64,000 nt of DNA from Phaeosaccion multiseriatum. Lineage: Eukaryota; Protista; Ochrophyta, other classes. Shown here piece by piece: positions 14,601 to 56,356 of this stretch (its first letter is position 1; each line of letters starts with the position of its first letter). The DNA is taken from the NCBI GenBank assembly GCA_965112735.1, contig OZ218950.1, positions 4,588,001-4,652,000 on the forward strand. Direction: 5' to 3'. Position numbers and translations under genes: made by a program. The notes below the pieces were generated by a model. It made no database searches. It was not told where the DNA came from and saw only the letters and a program-made list of their open reading frames with translations.

Positions 14601-16185
14601 CCACCACAAAGCGCACGCACACGGCTCCCTTGTTGCCAAGCCTGCCCCCCATGCCTGCCATACCCGCCACAGCACCTGTAATGCTGCCCACCCAACCCGA
14701 TACACCGGTGCTCCCTGCCGCCCCTCCGCCGAGCCGGGGCCCGGTGGCGATGCAGTTGCGCTGCACGCCAGAGATGTGGGGCAGCAGGCTTTGCTTGACA
14801 AACACTGCAATACACGTGCCCAGCAGCCGCTGCTCCACGAGAAAGTGGTACCGCAGACTGGTGCTTGAGGCCCCCCTCCACTCTCCTCCTCCTCCTCCTC
14901 CTTGATTATTGTCAGGACCACCGCTGCCACCTCCCCCCTTGGCTTGTTGGGACAGCCCTCTTGCGTAGACATCGAGATAGGCCACCATCGCCTTGAACCA
15001 CGCTAGTGAGTTGGCGCTACTCTGCACGTCCATCAAAGAGTCCATCACCACATTCTGAGCGCTCAGTTCAATCACCTCTTCCAGCCCCAGTGCGATGATG
15101 TCTGGTGCAGACTCGACTGCCGCTTTGGCTGCTGCGGCTCTTTCTTCTTCCGATGCGTCCTTCTTGTCCACTTTCCCACTCCCTCTTCCTGTGCCCCTTC
15201 CCCCCATCTCCTCCACCGCCAATGTCTCGTCCAGCCATGTTCGGAACTCTGTCGCGTCTTGCATGGGAGACTTGCCAGCCACATTCCACGTCCCACACTG
15301 CACCTTGAGCTTCAGGCGCCACTTCTTCTCTTCTTTGCTCTCCTGCCTCCATCTTTGTTTGATAAAATCTTGCTCCCACTCGGCCAAGTCATCCGCATAA
15401 GTGTACGGCACGCAGTGGCACTGCTCAGCGCATTGCGGCTTGTGCGCTCTCTGCTGACGCCCATCCGACGTAGGGACTTCGACCCCCCCCCCCCCTCCTC
15501 CTCCCACATGCTGTGAGTGCTGACTATCCAAAAGCGCGGCGTTCTCCACTGCTACTGTTACTGAGGGCTCGGCTATAGGCAGACCCGATTCGTCGTTGTC
15601 CACCCGGAGTGGAGTGATATCGACAGGCGTTGGCCGCTGTGGCAGCTTGGGAGGTGAGCGACTAGCAGGGGGAGGCGTAGCTGGTGGAGGTAGATGACGC
15701 CGGGGTAGAGCAGGTTTGCCTGATGGCGACCTACTCCGCGGCGATCCTGCTCTTCCTCCTCCTCCTCCTCCTCCTCCTCCTCCTCCTCCTCCTCCTCCTC
15801 CTCCTCCTCCTCCTCCTCCTCCTCCTCCTCCTCCTCCTCCTCCTCCTCCTCCTCCTCCTCCTCCTCCTCCTCCTCCTCCTCCTCCTCCTCCTCCTCCTCC
15901 TCCTCCTCCTCCTCCTCCTCCTCCTCCTCCTCCTCCTCCTCCTCCTCCTCCTCCTCCTCCTCCTCCTCCTCCTCCTCCTCCTTCTCCTCCTCCTCCTCCT
16001 CCTCCTCCTCCTTCTCCTCCTCCTCCTCCTCCTCCCCCCCCAGGAGACTTTTGTTCGCGGTTCTCCTCCTCCTGCTGCCCGCCCTCCTCGAGTTCTTCTC
16101 TGCCGAGCGTTGTCACCGCCTGCACTCCTCCAATGGAAGGGGCATCTTCCTCATGCGCCCCCCTTCCAGGCCCCACGCCATTCAT
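11679..16185 (-). CDS. Inositol polyphosphate 5-phosphatase (type II/OCRL-like catalytic domain), multi-exon
   Basis: GTWNVAGK, PDIIALGLEEVIELSA, GNKGAVCVRF, FCFANAHMAAH, VVFFMGDLNYRI, FPPTYKY, TPSWCDRVLW and SDHLPVSALF. Confidence 0.92.
15754..16038. repeat. Long (CCT)n/(GGA)n trinucleotide tract encoding poly-Gly in the 5-phosphatase ORF
   Basis: About 280 bp of nearly pure CCT repeat. Confidence 0.95.
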
Positions 16186-28183: not shown

Positions 28184-31100
28184 ATGAAGACGTCGGCTAG
28201 CGCTTTCGAAGGGGAATCGGGAGTGGAAGTGGAGAAACACTCTGGCAAAGGGGAGGATGAATTCGCGTTTTGGCGTGTGCGGAAGTGGTGTTTGCTATCC
28301 TTCCTTCAGTTTGATACTCCATGGGAGGAGGATGCTTACTACCTTGACATCCATGCAAGACTGCAGGTTAATGTGTGGGTTGGCCTCCTTGCCTGCCTGG
28401 TGTATGGGCTTGTTAACCTGACCATCTACCTCAACACTCGGGTGGACTACGGTGAGTCATGGAAGAATGGAATAGTGGGAACGAAACGAAGAAAAGATAG
28501 GGCTTGGGGGGTGAGAGGGGTAAGGCGCGTGTTCGGCGACCGAGAGGAAGAGATCAACAGGGAGGGGGGCGGTATTGTAAGCCTTTCCCTTCCTCGATAG
28601 CATCGCTCTCGCCAAACACCAGCAACCTTTCCTCCTCCTCACTGCCTCTCCACCAACTTCGCCTCCGTCCCCACCCGCAGAGTTCAACTCAATGGCACTG
28701 ATTGTGAGTATATACATGGCGCTCACATACGCCTGTGCTCGGGCCTTCGCGTGGAAGAACCGCGGCACACGACTCTTCTTTCTGCGGTGAGAGTCACTGA
28801 CATACCAATTCGGGCTTAGCTGAGCACTGCGCGGCATCGAGCGAATAGTATTGACTGGCCTCTTTCGCCGCCTTTGCAGCCCCAAGCCCGACACGCCGTC
28901 CTGCGGGGAAGGAGAGGGGGGTGGGGCAGCGGCTGAGGAGCACAACCGATTCTTATGTTCTGTGCTTCCTGGTCCGCACCTCTTCCATTCATTGCCCCCC
29001 TCACCTCCCTGCCGTCCCTCCTCTCACCCCGTCCTCTCCCTCCTTCTCTCCCTCCACCCCCACCTCTAACCCCCCCTCCACAGGCTGTGGGAGCCCTCTG
29101 TGGTGCTTGCCTACGTGTTCCTGATCCTGTGGAATCACTACCTCACCTGTACGGGCGATGTGTATTGCCAGCTCAACCTTGAACTGGGAGGAGCGCCCCT
29201 CATCTTCTGTCTAGGCCTTCTCTTCGGAGGCAACAGTGTCGTCGCCATGTCCATTCCCTCCCAATTCCTCTATTGGCTGGCGCTCAGGGATTTCCAAAGA
29301 GAGGCAACCGAAGTGTAAGTGTCTCTTTCTCTCTCTCTCTGTGTGTGAGCGTGAGTGTGAGTGTGTGTGTGTGCATACGGATGGGCAGGCATTCCGCGGT
29401 TGTCGATGTGGATTGTGATTTGCGCTGTTGTCACAATTCTTCTTCCTTCCCTTCGCCATCTGCTGTTTCCCTCCCTCACTCCATGCACATCACATATCCA
29501 TTGGCTTCATGCGTTACTCAGGGATTGGGCCCGGAACGGCGACACGACGGGGGCCTCGTCTTTACTCTTCACCCTCATTGCCATAGTCGCGGCGTACTCG
29601 ATTGAGAATAGGTGCGTAGTTTGACAGCACTACTTGGGTGTTTGCGTGCAGCGGGCAAGGGAAGGAAAACAGCTTGACCTTCGCCTCTTAGGCTTACGTA
29701 CTCTTTGTCTCTCCTCTCTCTCTCATTCTCCCTCTTGATTCTCTCTCTCTCCCCCCCTCTCTCCTCCGAAGCCGGAGGAAGTACTTTAAGAGCTCTCGCG
29801 CCACAGAGCAAGCAGTTTCCGACACGAGGCTATCGAACGGTGCGTATGGTGCACGGAGCAGGCTCCAAACTGACCCAGATCCCCACATCCGAGGCGGAGA
29901 GGAGGGGGGGAGGGAGGGGGGGGGGGGGGGAGCGCTACCCCTCTAAAAGACGAGATCGATGCATCATCGCCCCGCCTTTTCCTCTCCCTACTCAGCGAGT
30001 CACCCCCCCCCTCCCCCGCCTTGTCTGGGAAGTCCCTTATCAAAATTTGTCTCCATTTTTCGCGGGTGCTACACCCTTGGTCTCTCTCTCCGTCTGTCGC
30101 TCTATGTGTTTCTGACCCCTGCTACCTCCGCTGTCTGCCTCCCCTTGTCCTTGTCTCCCTGCTACCTCCGCTGTCTGCCTCCCCTTGTCCTTGTCTCCCT
30201 GCTACCTCCGCTGTCTGCCTCCCCTTGTCCTTGTCTCCCTGCTACCTCCGCTGTCTGCCTCCCCTTGTCCTTGTCTCCCTGCTACCTCCGCTGTCTGCCT
30301 CCCCTTGTCCTTGTCTCCCCCCACACACAGAGAGAGTCGCCGCCACTCTCCGCTACGCCTGCCACGAGCTCCGAAATACCTTGGTAAGTCAACAACCCCA
30401 TGTCAGTCTCTCTCAATTTGCTTAAACCATATGGTCGTAGCGGTACTCGGTACCTGGCAACTGTGGGTCGAAGGGTGGGAAAGGGTGACGCCTACCACTC
30501 CCCTCCTCACCCCTCCGACCCCCTTCTTCCTCCTCCTCCTCCTCCTCCTCCTCCTCCTCCTCCTCCTCCTCCTCCTCCTCCTCCTCCCCCTTCTCCTCCC
30601 TTGCCCCCCCCTTGCCATCACCGCAGCATTCCGTCAATGCGTCAGTGTCACAGCTCCACAGGATCATCCCCAAGACCAAGGAGGAGGCCAGCAACAGCGA
30701 CAATGAAGCGGGTGTTCGACAGCGTCTGCAGCGCCTGACACGTGTCCACTCCTCTCTTCGCGCCTTTTCTTCTGCCCCTCCTCTCGGCCCACCAACCGAC
30801 GCTGCACTCACCGCTGAGGAAGTATGGAAGGGGCTCTCTGTGCTCACTCAAATGGTGGACGTGTCGGCGGCTAAGATGGTGCGTGTGCGTGTGTGTGTGT
30901 GTGTGTGCGTGCGTTTGTGTCTCCTAGTTGAGTTCTTTTCTCTCTCTCTCTTCCTATAACACAACGGCCGAGGAGCAGCGAGGGGTGGGCAGGAACGGGG
31001 AGGGGAGCCGGAGCTACACCTTAATACGTTTCCCACCTCCCTCCCTCTTTCCTTCCTTTGGGTTTATTTCATCGATTTGTCCCTGTGTGCCCCCCCCACC

Positions 31101-31852
31101 CTCCCTGCACAGCTCTTCTTCACCCGAGACGTACTGCGAATGGAGCAAGGGGGCGTGAGGGACATGTGGTCGAGCGTGCCTACGGCAGTGCTGCGCAGCA
31201 GGACGGCAACGGTGCACACCACCAGCACCGAATGGGAGGAGGAGGGGGGGGGGGAGGAGGTGGAAGAGGGGCGCTCCGTGAAGACCAGGCTGCTGCAGTC
31301 AAGGAGGAGCGGTAATGGCCATTTGCCGCTGCAAGGTCGACCAGGAGGACCAGGGCCAACATTCAATGTGATGCCCAACAAGGGGCCCAATCAGCAAAGG
31401 CATGAGGAGCCGCCGTTGATGGACATGGACCTGAGTAGAGTGCGTGTGTGCCTGGTGGAAGAAGATCCCCTCAACCGCCTAATGGGGGAGGCCCTCCTTC
31501 GCAGCGCAGGGGTGGGCACATCCTGCGCAGCCACCACCACTTGTCCGGTCTTGCTGGGAGACGCCGTACACCTCTTGCCGCAGTTGAAGTACAGGGTAAA
31601 CCAGCACAAGGCTCAATCGCACAAGCCAGAGCAGCGGCAACAACCACAAGTCCAAGGTCAGGGTTTAAGGGAGGAGGATTTGGATTTGGATGCGCGCTTC
31701 GACATTTTGCTGATGGACGTGTATATGCAGGAGTCCAACGGGATGGACGTTTGTGCACAGCTGCGCGACAATGGGGTGCGAGTACCCATTCTCGCCATGA
31801 CTGCCGCCGACGACTTCGGCAGTGGTGTGGGTCTGGGCAATGGTGATGATGC

Positions 31853-31899
<47 letters not shown>

Positions 31900-34800
31900 C
31901 CGACGCGGAGTCCTCTATTGCAGCAGAGCAAGCTGCTAGGGCATGCGGCTTCTCGGGCTCGCTGGCCAAACCTTTCTCTGCTGACGGCTTACGGGAGGCT
32001 ATCGCGGCCGCCCTTGGTCCCGCTTGGAAGCCGTTGCCATCGGCATCGTCGCGACCACTACTGGCTGCTGCTGTACCACCAACTGCTGATGCTGCTGCCG
32101 ATGTGGTCGTCGCCTCCGTGTCTAAGGATGATTATGAGGGAGACGTGAATGCGAAGGAAGGTGGGGGGAGTGAGAAGGGCGAGGAGAAGGAGGATAGTGA
32201 GGGCGAGGGAGAGCAAGAGGTCGGGACGAACGGGGCGGATGAGAGCGAAGCAAGGGCAGCGTGGGCTTGCCTCGAGGCTCAGACATCCGAAGAAAAGAAT
32301 GATGATGCCTCTATTGGTGATGCGTTGACCGCGCGAGCAGCGGGGAGTGGCGCCCTCAAGGTGAAGGAGGGCACTGTCAAGTCTCGGATTCAGCAGATTG
32401 AGACGCAGCTCCAATGCAACAGCAGCTCATCGAGTCTTAATGATTCTTCTGGGGATGGGCTGGAGATGGCAGGGGCTGGGGAGGGGGGCAACTTGAGTCC
32501 AAAGGGCCTCGAAAAACTCTCGGCGGTGGATGACAATCAGCAACAGATAGCTCAGACGGAGGAGGAGTGGGAGGAGCAGGAAACGTACGATTGGATGCCT
32601 CAAGAGGAGGAGGGAGAGGACGACGGGGAGGAGGCAAAGGCGGGCATGGACTGTCTTTCTCCCAATGGTATGGCCAATCTTCCTCGGCTTGATAGCGGGC
32701 TTGACGGGATGCAACAGGAGGGGCTGAATCAGGTGGGGGAGGGAGCAGCAGCACCAGCAAGACCAGCTGCAGTGGACCCCCCCGTTGAGGAGGAGCCGGA
32801 CAACAGAGGACGACGACGACGAGGAGGAGGAGGAGGAGGAGGAGGAGGAGGAGGAGGGGAGAGAGCAGATAGAAGCCCGAGTGCAAGCAGCCCTCCCACT
32901 CCAGTCCCATGTCCGTCCACCCCTGGTCTCTTCTCCCCGAGCGGCGTCTCCATCGGTACGCTCGGCACCATCAATACTCTCGGCACCGCGGAAGGAGGGC
33001 CAATGGACACCTCCTCCTCCTGGGCTGTAGCATTGGAGGAGAGCATTGGCTCGGCATGGGCCACTGGAGCCGCCCTCAGATCGGCCACCGCGTCCTCCCC
33101 CAGCCCTTTTGGTGGGAGGAAGGGAGGGGGCGGGAAGGGAAACATTCTTTTCAGTGCCTTACGGGAGAGGGTTCCGACCTTGCCATCAGTGCGTGGGGCA
33201 AGGAAGCGAACGCGGACCGAAGGCAGCTCCATGGGGGAGGCCCTTGAGAATCATGCCTCGAATGCCTCTAATGCCAATGCTAATGGCAATGCTAATGGCA
33301 ATGCGGCGGTGATGCTGGTGCCAGGAGGAGGACGAGAGGGAGAGCCCACCCTTCCACCGCCACCACCATCAGTCGGGGATGCAGCCGAAGCAGCAGCAGC
33401 AGCGGCGGCGGCGGCGGCGGCGGCAAGTCACCAGAGGAAGTGGAATGACACGATCATACCTCGCGGACCAGCCACAGCAGCGTTAGCGTCAGTCGAAGGT
33501 GGAGGATCAGGAGCACTCCAATCCCAAGTGTTGGCGAGTGCAGCCGAATCACCAACGTCTTGCTGTGGTGGTCGCAATTGGGCCATGCTGGGACTCTGGC
33601 CCCTCTGGTCCAGGCGGTTACTCGGCCTCTTTTTCGAGGACTTCGAGAGAGAGAAGCGCTACCTGCGCTGGCTGCACCATGGGAGGAGGAGTCAAGGACA
33701 GGGTCAGGGTCAGGGTCAGGGTCACGCCAGAGGAAGGTCAACCTCAGAAACCTCAGACTCAGGGGGAGAGTTAGGGTCAGGGTCAGGGGTACTGCATTGG
33801 CCGCTGTGGACCGCGTTGGTACTGATGAGCGTACGCATCCTCGCCATGCCGCTTTTGGCGCAAGGACAGGAGGCCACTTACACAGAGGCGGGCTATACGC
33901 TCGCCCTCGGGGCCTACGCTTTCTACAGGTATAGAGGGTCGGGGGGAGGGAGGACGGAGAGGGGCGAGAGGGAGAAGGGGGAGGGAGGCGGGTCGTACGT
34001 TGTTGTTGTCGTTGCGGACGAGGTAGTTCAGTGTGCTTCCCTGTTGTGTTTCGTTTTTTCGTCCTTCCCTCTCATACCGTTTTGTTGCATTCGCTCCATC
34101 ATTCGTTACTCAGGACTGTGCTGTACCCGCACCCCCACGCCGCCACGTGGTTCCGCGTGGTGTGGGGCAACGCAGTGATCTTGCTGTTCATGCTCGTGAC
34201 GGTACTCAATCAAGAGCTGCTGTGCGACTACAACGTTACGCGCGACAGCCAGGTGAGATACGGGAGTGTACGGGCATACAGGAAACAGGGAATTTAATGC
34301 ACTACCGCAGTTGCCCCGATGTTTCTCATCCTTTTTGGCTCAATCAATCTCCCCTCTTCCTTTGCCCCGCCCCGCCCCCCTGCCATGCCTGCTGCCGCTC
34401 GCATCTCTGTGGCCTCTGCCCCCCCCCCCCCCCCTTCTTCCCCTCCCCTCCCCTCCCCTCCCTCCTTCTCCAATTCCCCTGCCTTTGGCCTCCAATCCCA
34501 AACCCAAATTGCACACCACCACACACACGCACACGCGCGCGGCAGTGTATGCTAGTACCCGAGGCGAGCTACTTTGTGCTCCTCACCGCTCTCTGTCTAG
34601 GCTGCCCCTCCTCCACCACCCTCCTCCTCCTCCTCCTGCGCGTCGCCTACTACAGCGACTACGGCCTAAACCAACAACCCCGTTACACCACATGGGATGC
34701 CTCCCCCCTCCCTGCGCGTCTGACTGTCGGGTCGTGGGTGCTGCTGGTCGGCATCGGAGTGGCTCTCAGCAACGCTGCCCTTGACTACGGGAGAAGGAGG

Positions 34801-42938: not shown

Positions 42939-43258
42939 CCGACACATCAATAGATTTTTTAGAGCGGAACGGCAAACTGGCGCATTTTTATACCGTCGAC
43001 CGCCGGCCCGGAAAAGGGAGAAGAAAAAGAAATTTGGAATTTTTTGGCAAAGGCGGGAAGAGCAAAATCGCCGACGAGGCAGGCAATCGGAGGGCAGGGG
43101 CGGAGGGCAGAGGGGCGGGCGGGGAGAGGGGCAGGTCAGGAAAGAGGAGAAGACAAAGGCATAGATGGCGATGGCGGGAACAAGGAGGCGAGCAGAGGTT
43201 AGGACAGGAAGGCGCGCGAGTGCAAGCAACCGCAACGAAGTTATCTCCGCCCACTCAC

Positions 43259-44845
43259 CTACAACGATTGTTGTACAGTCACAGCCCGGCAGGGCTGAGC
43301 CCGGGAGGGCTGAGCCCTGCAGGGCTGACTGCTTCCCCGGCTTGACGCCCCAGCTGTTGTTGATTCGTTGCCCGCCCGAGCACATGATGATGAGTGAGGA
43401 CAAGTAAGCAAGCCAGGGAAACTCAGGGGCTGTTTCTTGTTCAGGCAGCAAGCAAGCAAGTAGGCAACACCAATGGCTGGACAGGCAGATGAGCGAGACG
43501 CAGGCAGGGGCGCAATCAGCAACTTACTGGGAAGATGTTGTGGGTGGCGTGGCCTTGGAGTTGGCCATGCCTTTGAGAAGTCGTACAGCCCGAACAGAGT
43601 GATTGTTCGGGCCGCACAAGGGTCGCGCAACAGCGTGGCCTTGCATGTGGGGCAAGTCCACACCTTCTTGGCCCCCACGCACTCGTTGAATGCACCACAG
43701 GCGGTGCATGTCTTGGTGGTGAAGGCCTCGCTGGGCTCAAGCAGCACTAGTGAGCAGGAGGGAGAGGCGATGGCCTGAGCGAGAGGAGTTCGGGCAGCCA
43801 AAGAAGGAAGTCAATGAGAGGAATTGTTAGCTCAGCCACACGAGGGTTGCTGATGGGGACGGAGGTGTCTCAGTCTCAGCGACACCAGCCAGCCAGCCAG
43901 CCCAACACCAAGCCAACAACAAGCAACAGACGCACACACGCACCGTCTTGAGCCGTTGGCGGAATAGACCCATGGAGAGGGCGTCCATGTCCCTCCCCAT
44001 ATCCCTCGGCAGCCCCGAGATCTGGCGGCCCCGCCGGCTGGACCATGCCTGGGCTCGGACAGGAGGCAACACAAAGTGCGTGAAGTTCGCCACGATGAGC
44101 CGTATGGCTATCGTGTGGAGGACGAGCGTCTTGTGGTGCAAGAGCGCCCGCATCTTGGCCGCCTCCAGGCGAAGAGCCCGCGTGTCCTGTCCACTCTGTG
44201 CGCGGGCGGAGGGAGGGAGGGAGGGATTAGAAAGTGACATCAGCCACGACAAGAGACTTGGGCGAGGCACGCATCCTCCTCACCTGCGCTGCCTGCCACA
44301 CCTGGCTCTCCAGCTTCGCTATCCTCCTCTGCAGCGGCCGCATGGAGGCGGAGAAGCCGTGACCCACCCTGAAGAAGCGCCCAGTGTGGGCACACCAGAT
44401 GGACAGGAACGTCCGCACTCCGGGGTCGGCCCCTCCCCATCTTTGCTCGGGGGTTAGCTTTCCAAGATACTCCCTGACCTCGCGCCGGAACTCTGCCGTC
44501 TGCCCCTCCAGGGGATTCAGCACATCCACGTACTTGGTGTTGGCGTGGAGGCCAGAGCGCTGAGGAAGGTCCTCCACACGGAGACCGCGCCACTTTCTGT
44601 CCTGGCCATGCTCTCCTGCCATGTCTCGGTCCAGCTTCCTGATCTTGGCGTCCACGTCCGACAGCTCCTTCTTCTTCTTGCGGCGGCTCCGCCATTCCTT
44701 GACCTGATGTCGGCCAAGAGGGGAAACAAGCCACAAGCCAAAGGAGTTCTTTGAGATGACAAGGTGTCAAGGTACTACTGCTGCTGCTGCTCCTGCTGCT
44801 GCTACTACTGCTGCTACTACTGTTGCTGCTCTGCAGCTATTCCTG

Positions 44846-44886
<41 letters not shown>

Positions 44887-47879
44887 GCTACTCTTAAGAG
44901 TACTTACCCCGAGTTGCTGCAGGTCTCGACGAAGTAGCTTGGCTCTATAACGCAACTCTACCAACTCCTCCATCCGGCCCGCGTCGTCAGCCCCTTCCTC
45001 CCTCCCTCCCTCGCTCCCTCCCTCCCTCCCTCGCTCCCTCGCCCCCTCCCTCCCTCGCTCCCTCGCTCCCTCGCTCCCTCGCTCCCTCCCTCCCTCGCTC
45101 CCTCCCTCTCTTCCTCCCTCTCTCCCTCCCTCCCTCCCTCCCTCCCTCCCTCCCTCTCTTCCTCCCTCTCTCCCTCCCTCCCTCCCTCCCTCCCTCCCTC
45201 TCTCCCTCTCTCTCTCCCTCTCTCTCTCCCTCCCTCGCTCCCTCCCTCGCTCCCTCCCTCGCTCCCCCCCTCCCCCACCCCTCCCTCCCCCCCTCTCCCA
45301 CCCCCACCCGCTCCCCCAGGCCTCTCACGGCGGAGCTTGCAGTACTGCTCCAACTCCTCCTTCTCCCCCCTCTCCCCCCCATGCACTTCCATGTGCGGAA
45401 CAGCTCGTTGGGGTTCCTCAAACTGGAGATGGAGCGATGTACCATGGGCGCAGTCCCCTAGAACGGGCCCCGTCACACAAAGCCACGCTGGCTGCACCGA
45501 CGTCCCCCCATCCGCCTGGTGGGCTGGCTCCCGCCAAAGGCGCCGCGAGGGCTTCCCTGTCTGGTCGAACAGGGTCAGAGTGTGCCCCGCCGTGACGCAC
45601 ACGGTCACCCTCTCGATCCATCGGGCTCCGTTATTGACGAGGATGGCTTCACCCCCTCCAACGGTCACCCCAAAGTTCCGGTACTGCAGCCCAAACTCGC
45701 CCGGGTTGAGGTGCCCACAACACCCTGCCTTGAAGTATTCGGTGCTATGCACCTGCCTCTCCCCACGCTCCACTGCGCCGCGCTCCCCACGGAATCGCCC
45801 AACCCCAACGTGTGTCTGCATCGCGTCGATCTGCCTGTTAACGGATGGGGTGAGAAAGCGCCTCGACGGAGGCTGGAGACAACGCTCTTTGATTGTGTCC
45901 ACAGACGCTTGCTCAGTGCCAAGCTCGGCATGCTGTAGAGCCATGGTAAGGATCTCCGCCGCAGCCTTTGCCCTGCACTTGTCGCCGCCATACACGTAGC
46001 TGAGTGTAGTCTCTGTGTTGGCGAGTGTAGTCTCTCCGACATGTTGTGTGACGACAAGAGCGGCAAGGCGGGCCTCAAACACCGGGCCGCTCGTCAGCCC
46101 CTGCCAACTGTCCTGCCTGGCAAGAGTGGAGTATGCGCTCTGAACTCTCTCCTGCTGCTCCTGAGCCTTCTGCTCAACAGAATGCTCTGGAGGCCCCGGC
46201 TCTTCCTCAGTGGCTCCCCTCCCGACCCCCCTCCCCAGATCGACGCACCACTTCACGAGCCCGCGCGCAGCTTCCAGCACCTGCTTTGCTTCCTCCCCTC
46301 CTCTCGCTGCCATAAAACCAGCAGTTGTTGCAGCGTCCAGCACAAGCTTCCGCTGATCGTCTGTCTCATACTCCGCTGATTGGGCGTATGTTAGGGCCCC
46401 AGAGGCCGCCATGTGCTGGTAGGTCTCACGGTAGTTATCTTGGCCCTCCGGGCCGTGGACTGCCTTGTGAGCCTCCACAGCGAGAATGGCAATCTCTTCC
46501 GCGACAGGTCGTCGTCGGACGACGCTGAGCTTCTTGACCTGTGCCTTGACATCCCCGAGAAGAGTCAAAGGACTTGGGAGCTGCCGTCCAGCCTGCCGTC
46601 CTCGGAACTCCTCTGCCGTGGTGGGCCCTTCCTTGGAGCCGGCGTATTTGTACGTGAGGGAGGGCACAAACTCGGCTCTCGACATGTAGAGGGCCAACTC
46701 ATCTAGAAAGCCCTTTTGCATCTGAGAAGAGGGGCAGGCAAAGGCGTGTGAGTTGGCAGCGTCAGATGCAGCAGGTACAAGAAGAGCCGTGGCACACATG
46801 TTGGAATTCGGACCATCGTCGACATTTGGAGGGGGGTATTCCATTCTAGGCCTCATCTGTCCCTGGTGATATACCAGAGCGTGGGCTCCCTCTCTCCTCC
46901 CTTTCCCCTCCCCTCCCACTCAGCCACTCACCAGCACGCAGCGTCCTCGTCTCCCTTGCGTGATGAAGGAGTAAAGATTGGCCGCAAAAGCTACATGAGC
47001 CTGCTCGCGGATAGGGGGCGGTCGTCCCCTTGTCTCCGACCCCCCGCTCCCGTAGACGGTCATCCAGGGAATCTTCTCCGCCTTTGCAGACTGCAGCAGC
47101 AACTTGGCCTCCTCCACCGCCGCCTCCTCATGCCCTCGATACCTCTCCTGTAACAGGAGCGGCGCCATGAGGCTCCTCAGCTGCGTGTCAAGGCTATCGT
47201 CGGTATGCCACGAAAGAGAGGCCGTCCAAACCCCCCCCCCCTTTCCCCCTAGCTGCTTCGACACCCGCGTCCTCTTGGCACTGACATCAGCGCTTGCTTG
47301 CGAGCTTCCCCCGCGCATCCTCGCCGTGTCCTCCTTCCTCTCCTGCCACCCCTCTTCCTCCTCCCGCTTCTTCTTGGCCTGGCGGTTTTTCTTCTTCTCC
47401 GTCTTGGACGGAGGCCTGGGCAAGCGCTCCTTCTCATGGCCCTTCACCCCCTGCGCCGCCCAAACGCCAAGCACGCCTTGGCATGCCTCACTTGTCGCGC
47501 CAAGCTTCACCAACACCCCCAAGCACGCGTTGAATCGCTTCTTCGCGCCCCCGTAGGTCTGTGGTGACTCCAGGCTAAACTTGCGGGGCAGGCGCAGACC
47601 CTGCAACTCGTCATCGCGCCAGAGCCCCAAGAGTGCTTCAAGTCTCTTAGCCCCGGCCAGAAAGGAGGCACGGTTGGAGCTGCCCCCCGATTTGACCATT
47701 GACACAATGAGGTAGGGATCCATCCGCATCAACTGCTTGATCAACGTGAAGACTTGCTGCGCCTCCTCAGCCGAGTCCTCAGCCGTGAATGAGATTTCAT
47801 TCCCCACGCCCCACCACGGCTCGAGCTTAGCACTAAAGTGCCCCCAGAGTTTGCACAGCTCCGACCAGCAGCTGCCGCC

Positions 47880-47943
<64 letters not shown>

Positions 47944-50900
47944 GGCTCCTTGGCCCTCCCTTGAGCATCAAAAACCTCCCCCTGGATGGTGGTGTCCTCT
48001 CGGTGTTGTAGCATCCCATTGTCCAGGAGGAAGCGAGGAACGCACGCGACCAGATCCTTCAGCAAAGCCATGTCGTTGAAGGCACTCTGTGCCACCCCTC
48101 GACTCGCAGCTCCTCCCCTCAGCACACTCAACAGCGCTGGCTGCTGCTGGACAATCACAGATATTGTACTTCTGCTCTTCTTCTCCTTCGCCTTTCCACC
48201 TGTCTTCCTCTTTGCTGCCGCTTCCTTCTTCCTCTTTGCTGCTGCAGCAGCTGCCGCTTCCTCCTTCCTCTTGTTCTCCTCGGCCATCCGCATAGGGGCA
48301 AGCCGAGCGTTTCGCAACACTGTGGCGCCGGCCTCACCATCATCATCCCCTGTCGGGAGGAAACTATACATGTTGGAGCGGAATTGCTGCATCACCCGCC
48401 GATTCTGCTGCGCCGCCCTCTCGCGCCTTCGTAGCTTGTTCTTCTGCCTGTCCTCCCTCACTTGCGTTGATGCCATAATGGCATCATTCCGCTCCACACC
48501 AGCCCCCGAGACACGGTCGCTAGGGAAGGGCACATTCAACTTGAGGCGCTGGCCGTAGTGCTTCCATTTCTCGGGCTTCTCCGCCGTCAGGACGACCGGC
48601 TTGAAGCCCGAGACTTCGGCACCATCGCGACACAGGGGCATCGACTCCTTCGCCCAGGCACGGGCACACACGTCTGGAATGTGCATCCCCTCCCGAAGAG
48701 CCAACACGTCTTTCCCAACAGCCAACATGGACACCTTCCCTTTGCCCTCCTTGCAGTCCTCGCGAGCCGCGCAAGCCCGACGATGCGCCGCGAGCTGCAT
48801 AGGTCTCCTAGTCTGGCGCAAATAACGCCATGGGTCGGCGGCAAGCTTGAGGAGGAGGCACCGAAGCAGCAGGTCTTGCTTGTCTCCCTCCGCCGTCGGC
48901 TCCACCAGGACAATAAGAGTGGTGTTATGCCACGTTCGCCAGTGACCTTGACCCCCCGCGAAAGTGGCTAACACGTTCTTGTTCTCGAGCACCACCTTGA
49001 CCCTCCTCAAGCGCGGAAGCAGGTTGGAGCAGAAGAGGCTATCCTCTTTGACCTGACCATGCCAAGCGAGAAGAAGGTTGAAGAAAAGGTAAGGGGTGGA
49101 TTCTGCATCGGCTCCGTCGTGTCTGCCTGCCTGCCCATATGCCTGCCTGCCTGCCCATATGCCTGCCCATATGCCTGCCTGCCTGCCTGCCTGCCTCCCT
49201 CTCTGCCTGCCCATATGCCTCTCTGCCTGCCTGCCCATATGCCTGCCCATATGCCTGCCCATATGCCTGCCTGCCTGCCTGCCTGCCCATATGCCCCTGT
49301 TCCAGCCGTGCCCTTCGCTCAAATCAAATGCTCACCTCAAGGCCAGCGTCCGTGAGGATGCTCCTCCCCTCCCCCAGGACAGGGCGGGAGTCGCCAACGA
49401 AGATGACGCTGCAGTTCAGGCGTCCTTGTCTCGTCCGCTCTGCCAGTAGCCGGGCACAACCGATGCAGGGGAGGGTCGAGATGACCAGTATGAGCTCATC
49501 CTCACCAGTCCACCCGTGCCGCTTCTCAATGCACTCGAGTAGCTCCGGCTCGGCATGAGCACCTACAGTGACTCCGTGCAAACAGCTGGACACATCAGCT
49601 CTGGCCGGTCCACTCCGTCTTGCCACAAGCCACTCCTCTCTGGTGACGTTGTAGGCCCCCGCTGCTATGGCACTGTGGTTCTGCCCCGGTTCCTTCGCCT
49701 TCACAGCCTCAGAATACACACGCCTGGACAGATCCACCACACCGTCCTTCCACGGAACCTTCTCATCCAGCACCGTCGGACGCAGTTCCCGCCCCCCGCC
49801 CTCCTCCTGCTGCTGCTCCTGCTGCTGCTGCTGCTGCTGCTCCTGCTCCTGCTCCTGCTGCTGCTGCTGCTCCTGCTGCTGCTCAGGCGCGGACACGTCA
49901 GGCCTCGAAAGCAGCGTCGGCCCCCCGCGCTTCTTGCTCTTGTTCTTCTCTCTCTGCTGCTGCTGCTGCTGCTGCGGCGGCTCCTGCTGCTGCTGCTGCT
50001 GCGGCTGCTGCTCCTGAGGCGGGGGTAGGTCGGCCGCACACCAGGCATCCACAGCGCTGTTGGGCACCACGAGCACCTCGAACAGCAGATTGTTGTGCCT
50101 GCCTCTCATAAGGGCAATGCACTTGCGCTTGTCTGTATCCACCCCCCCGCCCAGGCCCTCCCAGAGGGCGTCGGCCATCTCCTTGCCCTACTCCTCACCG
50201 AGCATGGTGAACGACTCGACTCGATCGTTGCCCCCAGGTGCCTCAAAATCAGAGAGAGTCACACACTTTCCGTCGTCTCCAGTCTCCATCTCGCCGACCA
50301 GGACAATTCGTAGCCTCACTTCTGCCGCCTTGGTCGATCGGCACTCCGGAATAAGGAGCATGCCGCTCCCCTGGCCCAGAAACTCAGAGTGTTGGTGAGC
50401 AAACTTCTTGACCTTGTGGTACAGAGGGGTCAAGAGCACAGACAGGCAACGCTGGTCTACCTCCAGCCGGGCATAGGTCTGACGCACATCATGTGGCCGT
50501 GTCGTCGTCGCTCGCGTTCTCGCCTTGGCTCGACTGCGCTTCCTCGGCCTTGTCGAGAACGCGCCGGGGAAGAAAGGACTAAGCGCCTTTATAGCTGACC
50601 GAACGCCAGCCTTTTGCCCCTCAGCCTTCTCTGCGGCCCTCTATGACAAGAAGATACGACAAGAAGACAATAGGAGCGGAGAGGGAGGCGGCCAAAGGGT
50701 GAGCGAGGGGGTGCTTGGCATGTTGGAATCCGGAATGTAATTGTCAGGTGGGGGGAAAGTAGCATTCACAATTTTCTTACCTCCTCTTTCGCACGAGCCT
50801 TCCGCTTCTCCTCTGCTTCGCGCGCCTTGCGCCAAGCCTTGACGGCATCAGAGTCCTCCCCCCCCTTGTCCCCCAACCAACTCTTGAAGCAGTCCGCCTT

Positions 50901-51491
50901 CCAGGTCCTGCTTTGTGTGGGGCTCTTGTTGAGTTTTCTTTTGTTTTCGGCCTCCTTTATCCTCGTCCTCCCCTCCGGCGATCGGTCGAAGAGTGTGCGA
51001 AGCGAGATGGTCTGGCCTGCGCCTTGACCGTTCTTGGCCTGCAACAGAGAGAGGGAGAGAGGGGAGAGGATAAAATCTCAGTGGGAAAAGGCGTGGAACC
51101 GTGAGAGTATCGATGAATTCCTCACCTTTCCTTTCGCATTGGTGGGGGCCTTCTTCCCTTTCCCTCGCCCCGCAGACCCCGTCGCTGCCTTTGCCGGGCC
51201 CACCTTGCCGTCCCCTCCCCCGGCAGATCCCTTCACTCTGCTTTTTGCTGGGGCCTCCTTGCCCTTCGTCCCGGCCCGCCCTCCTGCTGATGCGCCCTGT
51301 GCCCGCCCCGCCGTCCTTGGTGCGTTTCGATTGGAACGGCCCTGTCCCCCCCGCACCTTGCGTCCTTTTCGCCTACGGCCCTGCTCCTCCCACTCCTCCT
51401 CCTCCTCCTCCTCCTCCTCCTTCTCCTCCTCCTCCTCCCACTCCTCCTCCTCCTCCCCACCCCAAACACCGTTTTCCCCCTCTACCTCCAT
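43259..51491 (-). CDS. Giant (~2,250 aa) deaminase - Fanzor2 (TnpB-like RuvC) fusion protein, 10-exon model
   Basis: Exons 51491-51126, 51038-50781, 50640-50199, 50132-49336, 49052-46932, 46862-45329, 44957-44908, 44703-44284, 44195-43944 and 43774-43259. All introns are GT..AG and phase-compatible. Confidence 0.62.
43282..43327. repeat. Three tandem 15-bp palindromic units AGCCC(NNNN)GGGCTG
   Basis: agcccggcagggctg / agcccgggagggctg / agccctgcagggctg, downstream of the RuvC-III. Confidence 0.85.
43550..44703 (-). other. Fanzor2 / IS607-TnpB-type RuvC nuclease domain + zinc finger (3 exons)
   Basis: RuvC-I GADPGVRTFLSIW (Asp 44425-44427). Bridge-helix region LHTIAIRLIVANFTHFVLPP..MDALSMGLFRQRLK. 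Shifted RuvC-II SEAFTTKTC (Glu 43727-43729). CTACG..VWTCPTC zinc finger. RuvC-III LRDPCAARTI (Asp 43622-43624). Confidence 0.92.
49336..49720 (-). other. Zn-dependent cytidine/adenosine deaminase domain (CDA fold; TadA/RibD/dCMP-deaminase-like)
   Basis: HAE (49549-49557), LILVISTLPCIGC (PCIGC 49456-49470) and GRSILTDAGLE|V terminal motif. Confidence 0.85.
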
Positions 51492-51708
51492 GGCTTGGGG
51501 GCGTCCATAAGCAGGCCCACTCCCTCCCTGTGACAGTCGGGGGGGGGGGGGGGGGGCTGTGTGCGTGAGATAAAAGGGAGGGCAGAAATGAGAGAGGGAG
51601 AGAGAGAGAGAGAGAGGACAGAACGAGAGGAGAGAGAGGAAAGAGAAGAGATAGAACAGAGGAGAGAGGATAGAACGAAAGCAGTTACAAAGCTGGGAAA
51701 AGGGTCCA

Positions 51709-51845
51709 ATCTGAGTTAGTTGGGAGGCAAATCTGATGTAAGTGGGGGGGCAAAACTGAGTTAGCCTCCGCTTTTGTCATGGCCTCATCCGAAGGTGGCA
51801 AAACTGAGTTAGGACTGAGTTATCCTGAGTTAGGACTGAGTTAGG
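51709..51845. repeat. Cluster of CTGAGTTAG motifs (about 6-7 copies; GGCAAAACTGAGTTAG twice)
   Basis: Read directly; lies just inside the right inverted repeat. Confidence 0.85.
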
Positions 51846-51867: not shown

Positions 51868-54800
51868 TCACAGGTCGTCGCGTTCCGCTTTGAAAAATGT
51901 TCTTGAACATGCGACATTTGAAGCTCTCACCTTCTTGCTGCCCTGCTGACCCCTGCCTTTCTTGCACTCTTCGTCGCAAGGGGCTGCCCCATACTGCTCA
52001 GAGGAGCTACCAATGCCGCTGGACGAAGCCTTGCGCTTCCTTGCCCTCGTGGATCGGCTGGCGGGCCCCTGTTGTTGGGGAGAGCGAGAAGGGCGGTCAA
52101 AGTAAGAACAAAAAAAAAATAACCAAGCAATGGGCGTGGCAGGGACGGGGGGAAAGAAACAGAAGCAAGCTTGCGTGCCTCGTCTTTACTCCTCCTCACC
52201 TTCGGACTCCACGTCGCCGTAGTACCCCCCTCCTCCTCCTCCCCAATGTCAGACTCCTCGTCAGGCCCACCTCTTCCTCCGCCTCCGCCTCCGCCTCCTC
52301 CTCCTCCTGCTCCTCCTCCTCCTCCTCCTCCTCCTCCTCCTCCTCCTCGGGCTCTCTTCCTGGGGCGTGGGGGTGGGGTCACTGACCTCCTCCCAGAAGC
52401 TCGCCCACCTCTTCCTCCTCCCCCCCCCGCCCCCTCCTCCTCCTCCTCCTCCCCCTCCTCCTCCTCCTCCTCCTCCTCCTCCTCCTCCTCCTCCTCGTCC
52501 TTCTCCCCACCACCACCACCACCACCACCACCACCACCCCGTCCTCCTCCTCCTCCTCCGGCAAATGTCGTCGCTGTCCTCACCCCCTCCTCATCCCCAT
52601 CCTCCTCCTCCTCCTCCTCCTCCTCCTCCTCATCCTCCTCCTCCTCCTCCTCAGAGAGAGAGTGGAGACAGAGAGAGGGGAGGAAGAAGGAGAGAAAGAA
52701 AGGGGAGAGAGGCAGATGGAGGGAGGGATGGAGGGATGGAGGGATGGAGGGATGGAGGGATGGATGGAGGGAGGGAGGGAGGGAGAAAGAGATGGAGAGA
52801 GAGGGAGAGCGAGAGAGAGCGCCTCGTTAGGATCAAAAAAAAAATGTGCGCATGCCTCCACTCCTGCCCAGCCTCTCCGATCCTCCTTACCTTCCACGCC
52901 GCTATCCTGTCCTCGTCATCGTCTCCTCCTCCTCCTCCTCCTCCTCCTGCTCCCCCTCCTGCTCCCCCTCCTGCTCCCCCTCCTCCTCCCCCTCCTCCTC
53001 TTCCTCCTCCTCCTCCTCCTCCTCCTCCTCCTCCTCCTCCTGCTCCCCCTCCTGCTCCTCCTCCTCCTCCTCCCCCTCCTCCTCTTCCTCCTCCTCCTCC
53101 TCCTGCTCCCCCTCCTCCTCTTCCTCCTCCTCTTCCCCTTCCTCTTCCTCTTCCTCCTCCTCCCCCCCCTCCTGCTCCCCCTCCTGCTCCCCCCCCTCCC
53201 CCTGCTGCTGCTGCTGCTGCCCCTCCTGCTGCTGCTGCTGCTGCTGCTCCTCCACTACGCATCGAAGCCTCCGCTGGGAGGATCCACTCCCTCAGCTGAG
53301 GAGGAGGAGGAGGAGGACGGTATCCATTGAATCCCCCCCCTCCTCCTCCCCCTCCTCTTCGGGGTCTCTTGGTTGTCGCTGACCTCATCCCATACACTCG
53401 TCGTTCACCATCACCGCCATCACCATCACCACCACCACCACCACCACCACCACCACCACCACCACCACCACCACCACCACCACCACCATCACCGCCATCA
53501 CTATCGACCTCCATAGGTAGCGGACCCAAAGCTCCCTCTTGTTCTGCCACCGGCTGTAGGCCGATAAAATGATGCGAGTAAAAGCCGATACAGCAGGATC
53601 TTGCCTCGTCCAGCTCGCCTTCTGGTCGTCCGTCATAAACAAGTTCGTCTTCGGGGATGCGTGGGCGTGCTTTTTCCAGACTCTCATAGACGGTGACCAA
53701 GGTGACCTTGATGGCAAAGTATTCGCAAAGCCAACGAATTTCATTCTCCCCAAGGTACTCTCCGTAAGTGCCGAGGGTGACAGGGTCAGGCTGTGGCTCA
53801 CCCGGCTTGTGATCGCGCTGATCCCCAGCGCTGCTGAGATACGCATGAGCCAGCTGCTGGCGCCACACAGACATGACTGGCTTGCCCTTGTCATCGAGCG
53901 GGATAGGCCTAGAAGGTCTATCGCTGTCCGGAAGATGCTGAAGGCACTGCTGCCAAAGGGCCCACAAGAAGCAATTTCCCTCCTTGGCAGTGGCCACGTA
54001 TCGGTGGGATGGGAAGATCCTCGCCCAGTGGACAGCATCCACAGCATTCAGTTCTTGCTTGTCCTGGGGAGGGAGAAAGAAAAAAAAAAAAAAAAAAAAA
54101 GGAAAAAAAAAAAAGACAGGCAGGCAGAAAGGGGGGGGGGAGAGGTGGTGTGAGAAGAGAGAGATGTGGAGAGAGGAGAGAAAATTAAGAGAAAAGAAAT
54201 CAAATTTAAAAAGACTGACTCACCGCGAGAGAAGCCTCCTCCTGTGTCTCCTGCTCTGCCCTCCTTCTCCTGCGCGCCTTCCCACCCCCCAGCATGGGGC
54301 CCTGGAAGACTCTGGTGGCCGCGCTGATGATGCTGTTTGGGCGCCGAATGCTGGTGTAATGGTTGCCATCGAAGGCCAGCCACAAAATGTCCTCCTCGGA
54401 GCTGGTCTCCTCTCTCGCCCTCTCCAGAGAGAAGTAATCGGTGGGCATCATGTATGATCCTGTATCCCCACCGGGATAAAGGACCACGCACCTCACACCC
54501 GTCGCTGCTTCCCAAAGGCGAAGGAAGAGACGCCCACCCTTTCGGTTGGGCTTCTCCACCTCGCAGATGAAGGCCTCCACACAGCCAGCACCGACGACGG
54601 TCTCCATCTCACGGCGCCTCTGGGGCAGACTGGCCCGCAGTTGCCGACAGGCCTCGGCCCTCACCTCCCTCGCCGATAGCCCTCGGCAGCGCTCTGGGCC
54701 CAGCACAGCGGCCATGACACACGCCTGGCTCTCCTTCTTCCCCTTCCCCTTCCTCCTCCTCCTCCTCCTCCTCCTCGTCCTCCTCCTCCTCCCCTTCCTC

Positions 54801-56356
54801 CTCCTCCCCTTCCTCCTCCTCCCCTTCCTTCCCTTCCCCCCCCTCCCCCTCCTCCTCTTCCTCTTCCTCCTCCGTCCCCCATCCCCCTCTCCCTCATCGT
54901 CACAAGGGTCGTCCTGTTGCACGTCCTGGCACTGGCCGCTGGTCGTGGCCGTGACCCCTTGCTCCCGTGTCGTGGAAACGCCCCCCCTCAGAAAAGGCGG
55001 CTGGAGGCAGCGAAGCAGCGGGCGGCAGTGGAGTGGAGGGGTATACAGTAGGGTTCAGCTTCCGGATACAATGAGATGGGTATTTAATGAGCCCTCACTC
55101 CTGGCTGGTTTTCGCAGTGACTTTCAACAACCCACTTTCACATCCCCCCCCCCCCTCCCCCCCCACGCACGCACACACACACTTTCGTACTCACCACCGC
55201 CAAGAGCCGTAGGCAGAGGTTAGCAAGCGCGGTGTACCAGGAACACCATCCACCTCCAGCTGCTAGTATGTAGAGTGGAGTGCGCCGGAACAATGGTGGG
55301 ATTGTGGTAAGCAGTGCCAGTAAGTTGGGAAAGGAGGAGACCCGTTGTGCCCGTTTCTTGTTCTCTCGCTCTTCCCGTCGCCTCCTTCTCTCCCGGCCAT
55401 CCCGCCTCCGCCTCTTCACACCCCGGGGCCGTCGCCGGCTCTCATTGGCGTCCCGGCACTGGCCCTGGCCCTCACCCGGCGGCTGATGGCCAGACGAGCT
55501 GCTGGCCCCTGTTGGTTGTTGTTGCTGCCGTCCAATCATGGAGTGGAGCAGCCAGACGGCCAACCCTCCGCAGCCCCACCAAGAAGGGCAAGAGACTAAC
55601 AGTGAAAAGTCTGGTGTGGCCCACAGCCACCACAGGAGAACGGTTTCTAAGAAACCCGTCACGCCCGCCCACCAACACCGCTCTTGCTGCTGCTCCGGCT
55701 CCTTCTTCTCCATCCTCCTCGGCAGGCATCGCTGCTGACGTCGCCACGTCCAGCGCCTTCTCTTGTGCGGAGGAGGAGCTTCTGTCTCAAAGCCGCTGCT
55801 GCTGTCGCTGCTGCTGGTGCTGGTGCTGGTGCTGCTACTGCTGCTACTGCTGCCGCCACCACCCGGCGAACCGCGCCGCTCCTGCTCCGCTTCCTGCTGC
55901 TGCTGCTGCTGCTGCTGCTCTTCTCTAGTACTGCGGGCGATGGCCAGGTCGAGGCGCCGGAGAATAACGTCAACGAGCCTCTGGGGGGGCTGTCGTCCCA
56001 CCCAGAGGCTTCTAAACAGGTGTGGGTCGTTCTGCTGGAGGCGCTTGATCTCCTCGTTGAGGAGACGACGAGTGGTGCTCTTGGCGTGATTGTCCACACG
56101 CCGGGCGTCTCTGTACGCACAACTGCCCACGACAGCACGGAGTAGCTCACGCCGCCGGGAGGATGCTTTGACCTCCTTGACCTCCTTTCTCCTCTTTTCT
56201 GCCAGGTCATTTTCCCTGGCTTGCCTCTTCTTCCTTTGAAATTGCTGTTCCTCCTCCAGCCTCTCCGCCTCCTCCTCTTCTGTCCTCTGTCTCCTCCTCC
56301 TCCTTCTTGCTCGTCTGTTCTTCTTCTTCCTCCTAGAAGTACGCTCCGTTGCCTCG
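51868..56356 (-). CDS. Tandem OTU-like cysteine protease protein with N-terminal hydrophobic segments (multi-exon; 5' end unresolved)
   Basis: Exons 56356-55195, 55000-54224, 54063-52891, 52649-52200 and 52068-51931 (or read-through to TGA at 51868). OTU1: QACVMAAV..EVRAEAC..KGGRLFL..WLAFDGNHYTSI. OTU2: KEGNCFLWAL..WRQQLA..EYLGENEIRWL..IGFYSHHFIGL. Confidence 0.68.

Follow-up and report, generated by a model that had tools for sequence, protein, structure and literature searches.

A 64,000-nt stretch of the Phaeosaccion multiseriatum genome (contig OZ218950.1; here called the window) carries, on the minus strand at 51.5-43.2 kb, a locus in which a zinc deaminase and a Fanzor2 (TnpB-type) nuclease are probably encoded within one spliced reading frame. 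On balance we also favour the view, with slightly less assurance, that the locus represents a transcribed gene with introns, part of a multi-copy mobile element residing in a GC-rich and repeat-rich genome. Minus-strand open reading frames (ORFs) of 284, 800 and 653 amino acids follow one another in this region and are succeeded by three shorter ones. Runs as long as 800 and 653 codons without a stop greatly exceed chance expectation at 60% GC (an estimated ~0.03 stops per codon), and coding-type periodicity, with high GC at the first and third codon positions and low GC at the second, is present in exons D, E, F, G and H. The intact form of the family would be one protein of ~2,200 aa, in which a basic N-terminal region is followed by a deaminase of the cytidine deaminase (CDA) fold at approximately aa 495-640, then by ~1,250 aa of lineage-specific sequence, and finally by a Fanzor2/IS607-TnpB-type RuvC-zinc-ribbon nuclease with the relocated glutamate typical of Fanzor proteins and an intact D-E-D triad. 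A preliminary description of this DNA had linked these parts with nine introns, and that model does translate into 2,254 aa without an internal stop. Its central claim of a gene running in frame from deaminase to nuclease is partly upheld, by contigs at the D-E and E-F splices and by homology across exons G, H and I, whereas two joints that it had flagged have been redrawn. The parts of the gene are as follows.

51126-51491, minus strand: predicted exon 1, with an ATG at 51491 and acidic and basic low-complexity sequence (in-frame GT..AG model)
50781-51038, minus strand: predicted exon 2 (in-frame GT..AG model)
49336-50640, minus strand: continuous exon, formerly drawn as exons 3 and 4, with the deaminase domain at its end (contigs)
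50188-50190, minus strand: in-frame TAG of the window sequence only, GAG in runs X4 and X8
49336-49788, minus strand: zinc-deaminase domain of predicted CDA fold, with HAE at 49557-49549 and PCIGC at 49470-49456
49053-49335, minus strand: intron of 283 nt, GTGAGC..GGTCAG, phase 0 (X8 contig joint)
46932-49052, minus strand: exon E, 707 aa, with coding periodicity and no detectable relative
46722-46931, minus strand: intron of 210 nt, GTGAGT..TCTCAG, in frame (X8 contig end, depth and overlap)
45329-46721, minus strand: exon F, 464 aa, an orphan with a helical and then a beta-rich part (X8 contigs cover 45426-46643)
44958-45328, minus strand: (GGGA)n tract, formerly drawn as an intron; both frame 1 and frame 2 stay open throughout
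44908-44957, minus strand: small exon 7, with a GTAAGT donor after it and a 5' boundary that is probably further upstream
44284-44703, minus strand: exon G, containing RuvC-I (GADPG, Asp codon 44427-44425; phmmer and hhalign against Fanzor2 relatives)
43944-44195, minus strand: exon H, the RuvC helical core (ANFTHFVLP region), where the alignment to relative L002 is unbroken across both flanking introns
43526-43774, minus strand: exon I, containing the relocated RuvC-II Glu (43729-43727), the CxxC..CxxC zinc ribbon (43708-43643) and the RuvC-III Asp (43624-43622)

The splices between the deaminase and exon F were assessed with the assembled contigs, not the raw reads, of runs X2, X4 and X8, all from the same organism; repeat tracts were masked. 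The intron predicted between the deaminase and the next exon is reproduced by an exact joint, as a 1,455-nt X8 contig joins 49050 to 49334 and skips 283 nt, the ends of which are CT..AC on the plus strand and so GT..AG on the coding strand. No unspliced form of this intron is present in X8. Contigs of X2 and X4, which look like genomic DNA, continue from exon E into the intron without a splice. The splice is real irrespective of whether X8 represents cDNA or contains a processed copy. RNA run X1 was rejected as evidence of expression because it matches only a (GCAGGCAG)-type repeat at 49120-49155.

At the following junction, the alignment of a second X8 contig ends exactly at the donor (46931/46932) and leaves 108 letters unplaced, and X8 has no coverage of 46750-46931. 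These 108 letters match 46614-46721 exactly, and the depth of the X8 bin equals the sum of 94 nt from one contig and 108 nt from the other (541.7 x 200 = 634.8 x 94 + 449.6 x 108). A 30-nt unitig overlap with the neighbouring contig sets the acceptor at 46722. The 210-nt intron defined in this way was inferred from depths and the unitig overlap and not from a listed joint; it takes out the TGA at 46922-46920 and leads from exon E to exon F in frame. An intron of 69 nt (46931-46863) had been proposed at this position. Its donor is indeed used, but its acceptor was rejected, because the depths, the unplaced letters and the overlap all place the acceptor at 46722.

Upstream of the deaminase, ORFs C and D lie in one frame and are parted by a single TAG, which the preliminary description had removed with a 66-nt intron (50198-50133). 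Contigs of X4 and X8 span 50023-50340 without a gap, retaining the proposed intron, and at position 50190 they show A>C in 1525/1525 (X4) and 340/340 (X8). The codon is therefore GAG in both runs, the frame is simply continuous, and ORFs C and D constitute one exon; the 66-nt intron was discarded. The TAG is a private nonsense change of the window copy or an assembly error.

In the DNA-like runs, minority contigs that are 90-95% alike extend over D, E, F and G. Since all of these parts are represented, the whole unit is repeated, as in a multi-copy element. The scorable differences between copies (n = 37) comprise 7 synonymous and 30 non-synonymous changes, distributed 15/12/10 over the codon positions. 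Together with the TAG, and with searches that found no homologues outside this genome, this distribution would fit a dead relic, in which the window copy and perhaps the whole family is decaying, the frames are open only because the copies are young, and nothing is made or used. We regard this as rather doubtful: the 800- and 653-aa ORFs and the catalytic motifs of both enzymes are intact, contigs carry correctly spliced forms at high depth, and neutral divergence is normal among copies of an active family and hence uninformative about a master copy.

The deaminase forms the end of the 284-aa ORF. Its HAE and PCxxC motifs, noted in the preliminary description, were confirmed in the arrangement HAE-x26-PCxxC and occupy aa 570-572 (HAE) and 599-603 (PCIGC) in the model. 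The best Pfam match, below the cutoff, is PF00383 (dCMP_cyt_deam_1; E 0.002, profile positions 6-92 of 102), and the second is SNAD4, an AID/APOBEC-like family. Each of the 10 best look-alikes in the ESM-Atlas carries PF00383, with scores of 0.83-0.88 that make them leads only. Searches of NCBIfam, PHROGs and PADLOC gave no match for the domain, and a scan of IMG/VR returned no relatives. A single-sequence AlphaFold model was poor (pLDDT 46), although its helix-strand-helix-strand order fits. The Foldseek list obtained with this poor model, headed by APOBEC2/3, AID, plant CDA and DYW, is suggestive at most (all E >= 0.05, none significant). Taken together, these results make the domain very likely a highly divergent but catalytically complete CDA-fold deaminase. 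Its terminal 'DAGLE|V' had been described as completed only by splicing, which does not hold, since the V is encoded in both the spliced and the unspliced sequence.

The same similarities could instead indicate a nucleotide-pool enzyme, that is, a dCMP/dCTP-type deaminase of viral origin that acts on free nucleotides, as in giant viruses and phages. In this direction point the rank of dCMP_cyt_deam_1 as best Pfam model, the identity of the nearest ESM-Atlas look-alikes (small dCMP_cyt_deam_1/MafB19-type deaminases of phages, diatoms and green algae), the giant-virus contigs among the closest relatives of the RuvC exon, and the '..DAGLEV' C-terminus, which we take to resemble the ending of dCMP deaminase, RibD and TadA. 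However, the Atlas matches have the limit stated above, SNAD4 stands second in Pfam, APOBECs head the non-significant Foldseek list, and there is no obvious rationale for a covalent link between a nucleotide-pool enzyme and a DNA nuclease. We consider a pool enzyme unlikely.

At the opposite end of the protein, the last exon reads unambiguously as TnpB from its sequence. It matches PF07282 above the cutoff (E 4.4e-8) and NCBIfam IS607_TnpB (2.7e-6), and among PDB entries it matches UnCas12m4a (1.8e-6) and the mimivirus TnpB-like protein L79 (Fanzor2, 9b0l; 4.5e-5); Cas12f models and the Cas12f1-like TNB are matched as well. With the D-E-D residues in place, these matches bear out the earlier assignment of a Fanzor2-type RuvC and zinc finger. 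A metagenome scan with the last exon identified two Fanzor2-like proteins, L002 (534 aa) and L005 (542 aa), and a further scan identified nine more relatives on viral contigs, one of them a giant-virus metagenome-assembled genome. The equivalent scan with exon G found no relatives. The two metagenomic loci (L002:150-1751 and L005:1891-3516) are low in GC and 53% identical, and share a conserved N-terminal extension of ~160 aa before the TnpB core.

The relatives align without a break over exons G, H and I, from RuvC-I to RuvC-III (phmmer 1e-11; 11-sequence profile 8e-15; hhalign probability 97.4). This continuity supports the two introns that had been placed within the nuclease (44283-44196 and 43943-43775). 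The RuvC-I Asp lies in GADPG, opposite which L002 has FFDPG and the profile GiDlG. The relocated Glu lies in SEAFTTKTC, which aligns to NEAFTTKTC of L002 and L005, and the canonical 'iEdL' site is occupied by LPPV, compared to LPKL in the relatives. The RD of RuvC-III is present, and both Asn of RDxNAAxN are replaced, by Cys and Thr.

The connection between exons F and G passes through two repeat tracts, (GGGA)n and a triplet repeat, which were masked in contig placement. We propose that exon F would join exon G across the (GGGA)n tract, either by an intron or by a 1-nt frame difference. Frame 1, to which exons 7 and G belong, has no stop between 45324 and 44770 and overlaps the open frame of exon F; the donor at 45328 could pair with any of 29 in-phase acceptors, and the frames would equally be joined by an indel of 1 nt. 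The depth of X8 in the bins of 44750-45149 fits, by arithmetic, a cover of approximately 44908-44985, which suggests that the RNA extends upstream of the acceptor at 44958. The intron formerly drawn at 45328-44958 is thus probably wrong, and no single-intron alternative from F to G with good sites was found.

Uncertainty at this point leaves room for two genes, of which the first would comprise the deaminase and exons E and F and end in or before the (GGGA)n tract, while the second would be a separate Fanzor gene, N-terminally truncated or differently spliced. The single frame would then be only apparent, produced by a permissive choice of splice sites where purine-rich DNA leaves every frame open. 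The acceptor at 44958 is purine-rich and atypical (TGGTAG), whereas 7/8 of the other acceptors are CAG; the large number of in-phase acceptors makes a frame match cheap; and the lack of a well-placed single intron and of X8 coverage of this junction also fits two genes. Against this arrangement speaks the space available before the nuclease. The frame of exon G opens at most 112 codons before RuvC-I (~60-110 in its own exon), compared to ~330 aa in the Fanzor2 relatives. Upstream exons are therefore needed, and exon F is the only long ORF at hand; a stand-alone Fanzor gene starting inside exon G was rejected for the same reason. Exon 7, moreover, shares its frame with exon G and is followed by a perfect GTAAGT donor. 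X8 depth is alike over F and G, and no TGTAA or AATAAA is found on the minus strand between 51689 and 42000, so that a poly(A) signal motif is lacking between the two. The F-G link is likely on these grounds, and separate genes are improbable.

Exons E and F together encode ~1,170 aa. The preliminary description had left ~1,250 aa in the middle of the protein unassigned, and they remain so, as no homologue of either exon was found in any collection searched. Neither exon E nor its C-terminal 311 aa gave a match in a word-index homologue search. When 1.84 billion representatives were searched exhaustively with exon E in HMMER, a single match was returned (P0001), a bacterial MBG-repeat protein that was rejected as spurious. 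Scans of IMG/VR with both exons found no relatives, the ESM-Atlas returned nothing recognisable for them, and in PHROGs, NCBIfam and PADLOC the last exon of the gene alone was recognised. Exon F presumably holds the WED-like region of the nuclease. Within exon F, a minority X2/X4 contig skips 149 nt (45893-46043); the skip has TG..AT ends and was read as a deleted paralogue and not as an intron. The protein also contains three [LIVM]RGG motifs, compared to 0.32 expected by shuffling (P 0.006).

~51356, minus strand: KVRGG (aa 46)
48125-48111, minus strand: VLRGG (aa 954), in exon E
47321-47307, minus strand: RMRGG (aa 1222), in exon E

Two of the three lie between the deaminase and RuvC, and upstream ORFs (52651-54042 and 54206-54922) contain OTU-like Cys and His motifs, so one chain might be cut at ubiquitin-like xRGG sites by these OTU-like proteases or by host deubiquitinases, leaving deaminase and nuclease to act apart as a fusion without mechanistic coupling; yet such a processed polyprotein is quite improbable, given that the motif was picked after looking, that the protein is Gly/Arg-rich in patches, that L.GG as such is not enriched, that Pfam finds no OTU domain in the upstream ORFs and that nothing ties these ORFs to the same transcript.

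For a single fused protein, we envisage that the nuclease would be guided by RNA from the 3' end of the element, as in Fanzor2, and would serve maintenance or homing of the element. The tethered deaminase could then act on DNA bared at or near the guided target, in an R-loop or on a resected single strand, with the outcome that the target is mutated or that uracil-dependent nicks are made that aid break formation. Even given the fusion, RNA-guided DNA deamination would be less likely than not, and overall it is improbable. The proposal that a transposon family has evolved an RNA-guided DNA deaminase, with a Fanzor2 R-loop and a linked enzyme that edits or uracilates the displaced strand, is improbable to the same degree. 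Editing of the displaced strand would silence targets by mutation, or would turn uracil repair into breaks that drive homing.

Several observations weigh against these proposals, some of them at the level of the gene and others at the level of the mechanism. The library type of X8 is only guessed ('DNA?'), and no contig was seen to bridge exons F and G, X8 having a gap in coverage at 45329-45425. Shortly before the deaminase, the frame of the window copy is broken by a premature TAG; substitutions among copies look like neutral decay and show no purifying selection. Exons E and F match nothing in any collection searched, and the architecture lacks cross-species conservation. The deaminase falls under the Pfam cutoff for PF00383 (18.2 compared to 25 bits), has no match among 5.8 billion clustered proteins or PDB sequences, and appears as much like dCMP/TadA/RibD-type enzymes as like DNA mutators. 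A WED/REC signal was absent by hmmsearch, hhalign, a three-frame search (52-43 kb) and a motif search, and the N-terminal 176 columns of the relatives' profile, which represent WED/REC, have no partner in the model or in the three frames. For the C-terminal 300 aa of exon F, AlphaFold predicts a beta-rich stretch and then a helix, which is the expected order, but the model (pLDDT 40) is too poor to settle the matter. Finally, the D-E-D triad is intact (44427, 43729, 43624), so the protein is neither a nickase nor a dead nuclease, unlike what a pure base editor needs. RNA-guided deamination would be a reasonable extrapolation, with three points to its disadvantage: the triad is intact, the guide-binding half is unrecognised and the class of the deaminase is uncertain.

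Comparison with known systems places the nuclease module closest to Fanzor2 (mimivirus L79 / ApmFz2, PDB 9b0l) and IS607-TnpB. It shares with them the RuvC-I Asp and a relocated Glu directly before the zinc ribbon; EAFTTKTC is identical in L002 and L005, and the CxxC..CxxC TNB ribbon and the RD of RuvC-III are also Fanzor2-like. A eukaryotic genome, spliceosomal introns and a multi-copy state are further points of likeness. The predicted protein departs from Fanzor2 in being ~4x longer, with a deaminase domain within its N-terminal ~1,900 aa, in lacking the RuvC-III asparagines (RDPCAARTI), in its unrecognised WED/REC half, and in the absence of a nearby TnpA serine recombinase.

On paper, an N-terminal deaminase linked to an R-loop-forming RNA-guided protein resembles engineered editors in which a deaminase is fused to Cas9, Cas12f, TnpB or Fanzor. 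Those editors rely on a short linker and on a nuclease that is dead or reduced to a nickase, whereas the protein considered here, known from sequence alone, has an intact triad and a spacer of ~1,280 aa that is probably folded. With dCMP/TadA/RibD-type deaminases (PF00383, PF14437) and AID/APOBEC-like mutators (SNAD4, PF18750) the deaminase shares HAE-x26-PCxxC, an '..AG[IL]xV' ending and the predicted helix-strand-helix-strand order; unlike them, it falls below every curated threshold, has no close relative and forms part of a giant protein. Among transposons with DNA-modifying enzymes, the KDZ elements with TET/JBP dioxygenases offer a precedent. The locus resembles these in combining, within a mobile element, a nucleobase-modifying enzyme with DNA-cutting machinery. 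It differs in the class of enzyme and in the transposase, which is not of the same type and of which none was identified here.

Downstream of the last exon, the reading frame remains open over one further segment.

43259-43525, minus strand: open tail with a donor-like GTAAGT start, a candidate 3' untranslated region, guide-RNA region or element end

In its last ~88 codons (43525-43262, 264 nt) the GC periodicity is lost and the sequence is not coding-like. Three tandem 15-nt palindromic units (AGCCCGGCAGGGCTG-like) at 43283-43328 are a candidate element end or guide-RNA feature. The fold of 42950-43560 has a z of -1.67, an Rfam search of the whole window gave no match, and a search for inverted repeats around the element gave only simple-sequence matches. 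Just upstream of the predicted start, several copies of a 19-nt unit containing CTGAGTTAG occupy 51701-51843, with a minus-strand TGTAA at 51689; these units could mark the end of the upstream gene or form a subterminal repeat array. The OTU-like motifs of the two upstream minus-strand ORFs (EGNCFLWAL / SHHFIGL; DGNHYTSI) are set apart by poly-Gly, poly-Ala and poly-Pro tracts. Elsewhere in the window are apparent host genes encoding a response-regulator receiver domain (31077-34178, plus strand) and an endonuclease/exonuclease/phosphatase domain (13891-16185, minus strand).

To our knowledge, all known base editors are laboratory fusions, and we know of no natural TnpB, Fanzor or Cas12 protein that carries a base-modifying enzyme; the natural proteins are nucleases or, if inactivated, repressors. 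In agreement with the preliminary description, which was aware of no natural Fanzor-deaminase fusion, a search of the searchable literature for a natural fusion of Fanzor or TnpB with a deaminase returned only engineered editors and reviews. If an expressed and spliced deaminase-Fanzor protein does exist in this organism, evolution would have arrived at the architecture of a base editor, which would offer a new eukaryote-adapted chassis and would raise the question of how targeted deamination benefits a transposon. Should the two enzymes act apart, an orphan region of ~1,250 aa and a very divergent deaminase clade would still be added to the Fanzor repertoire.

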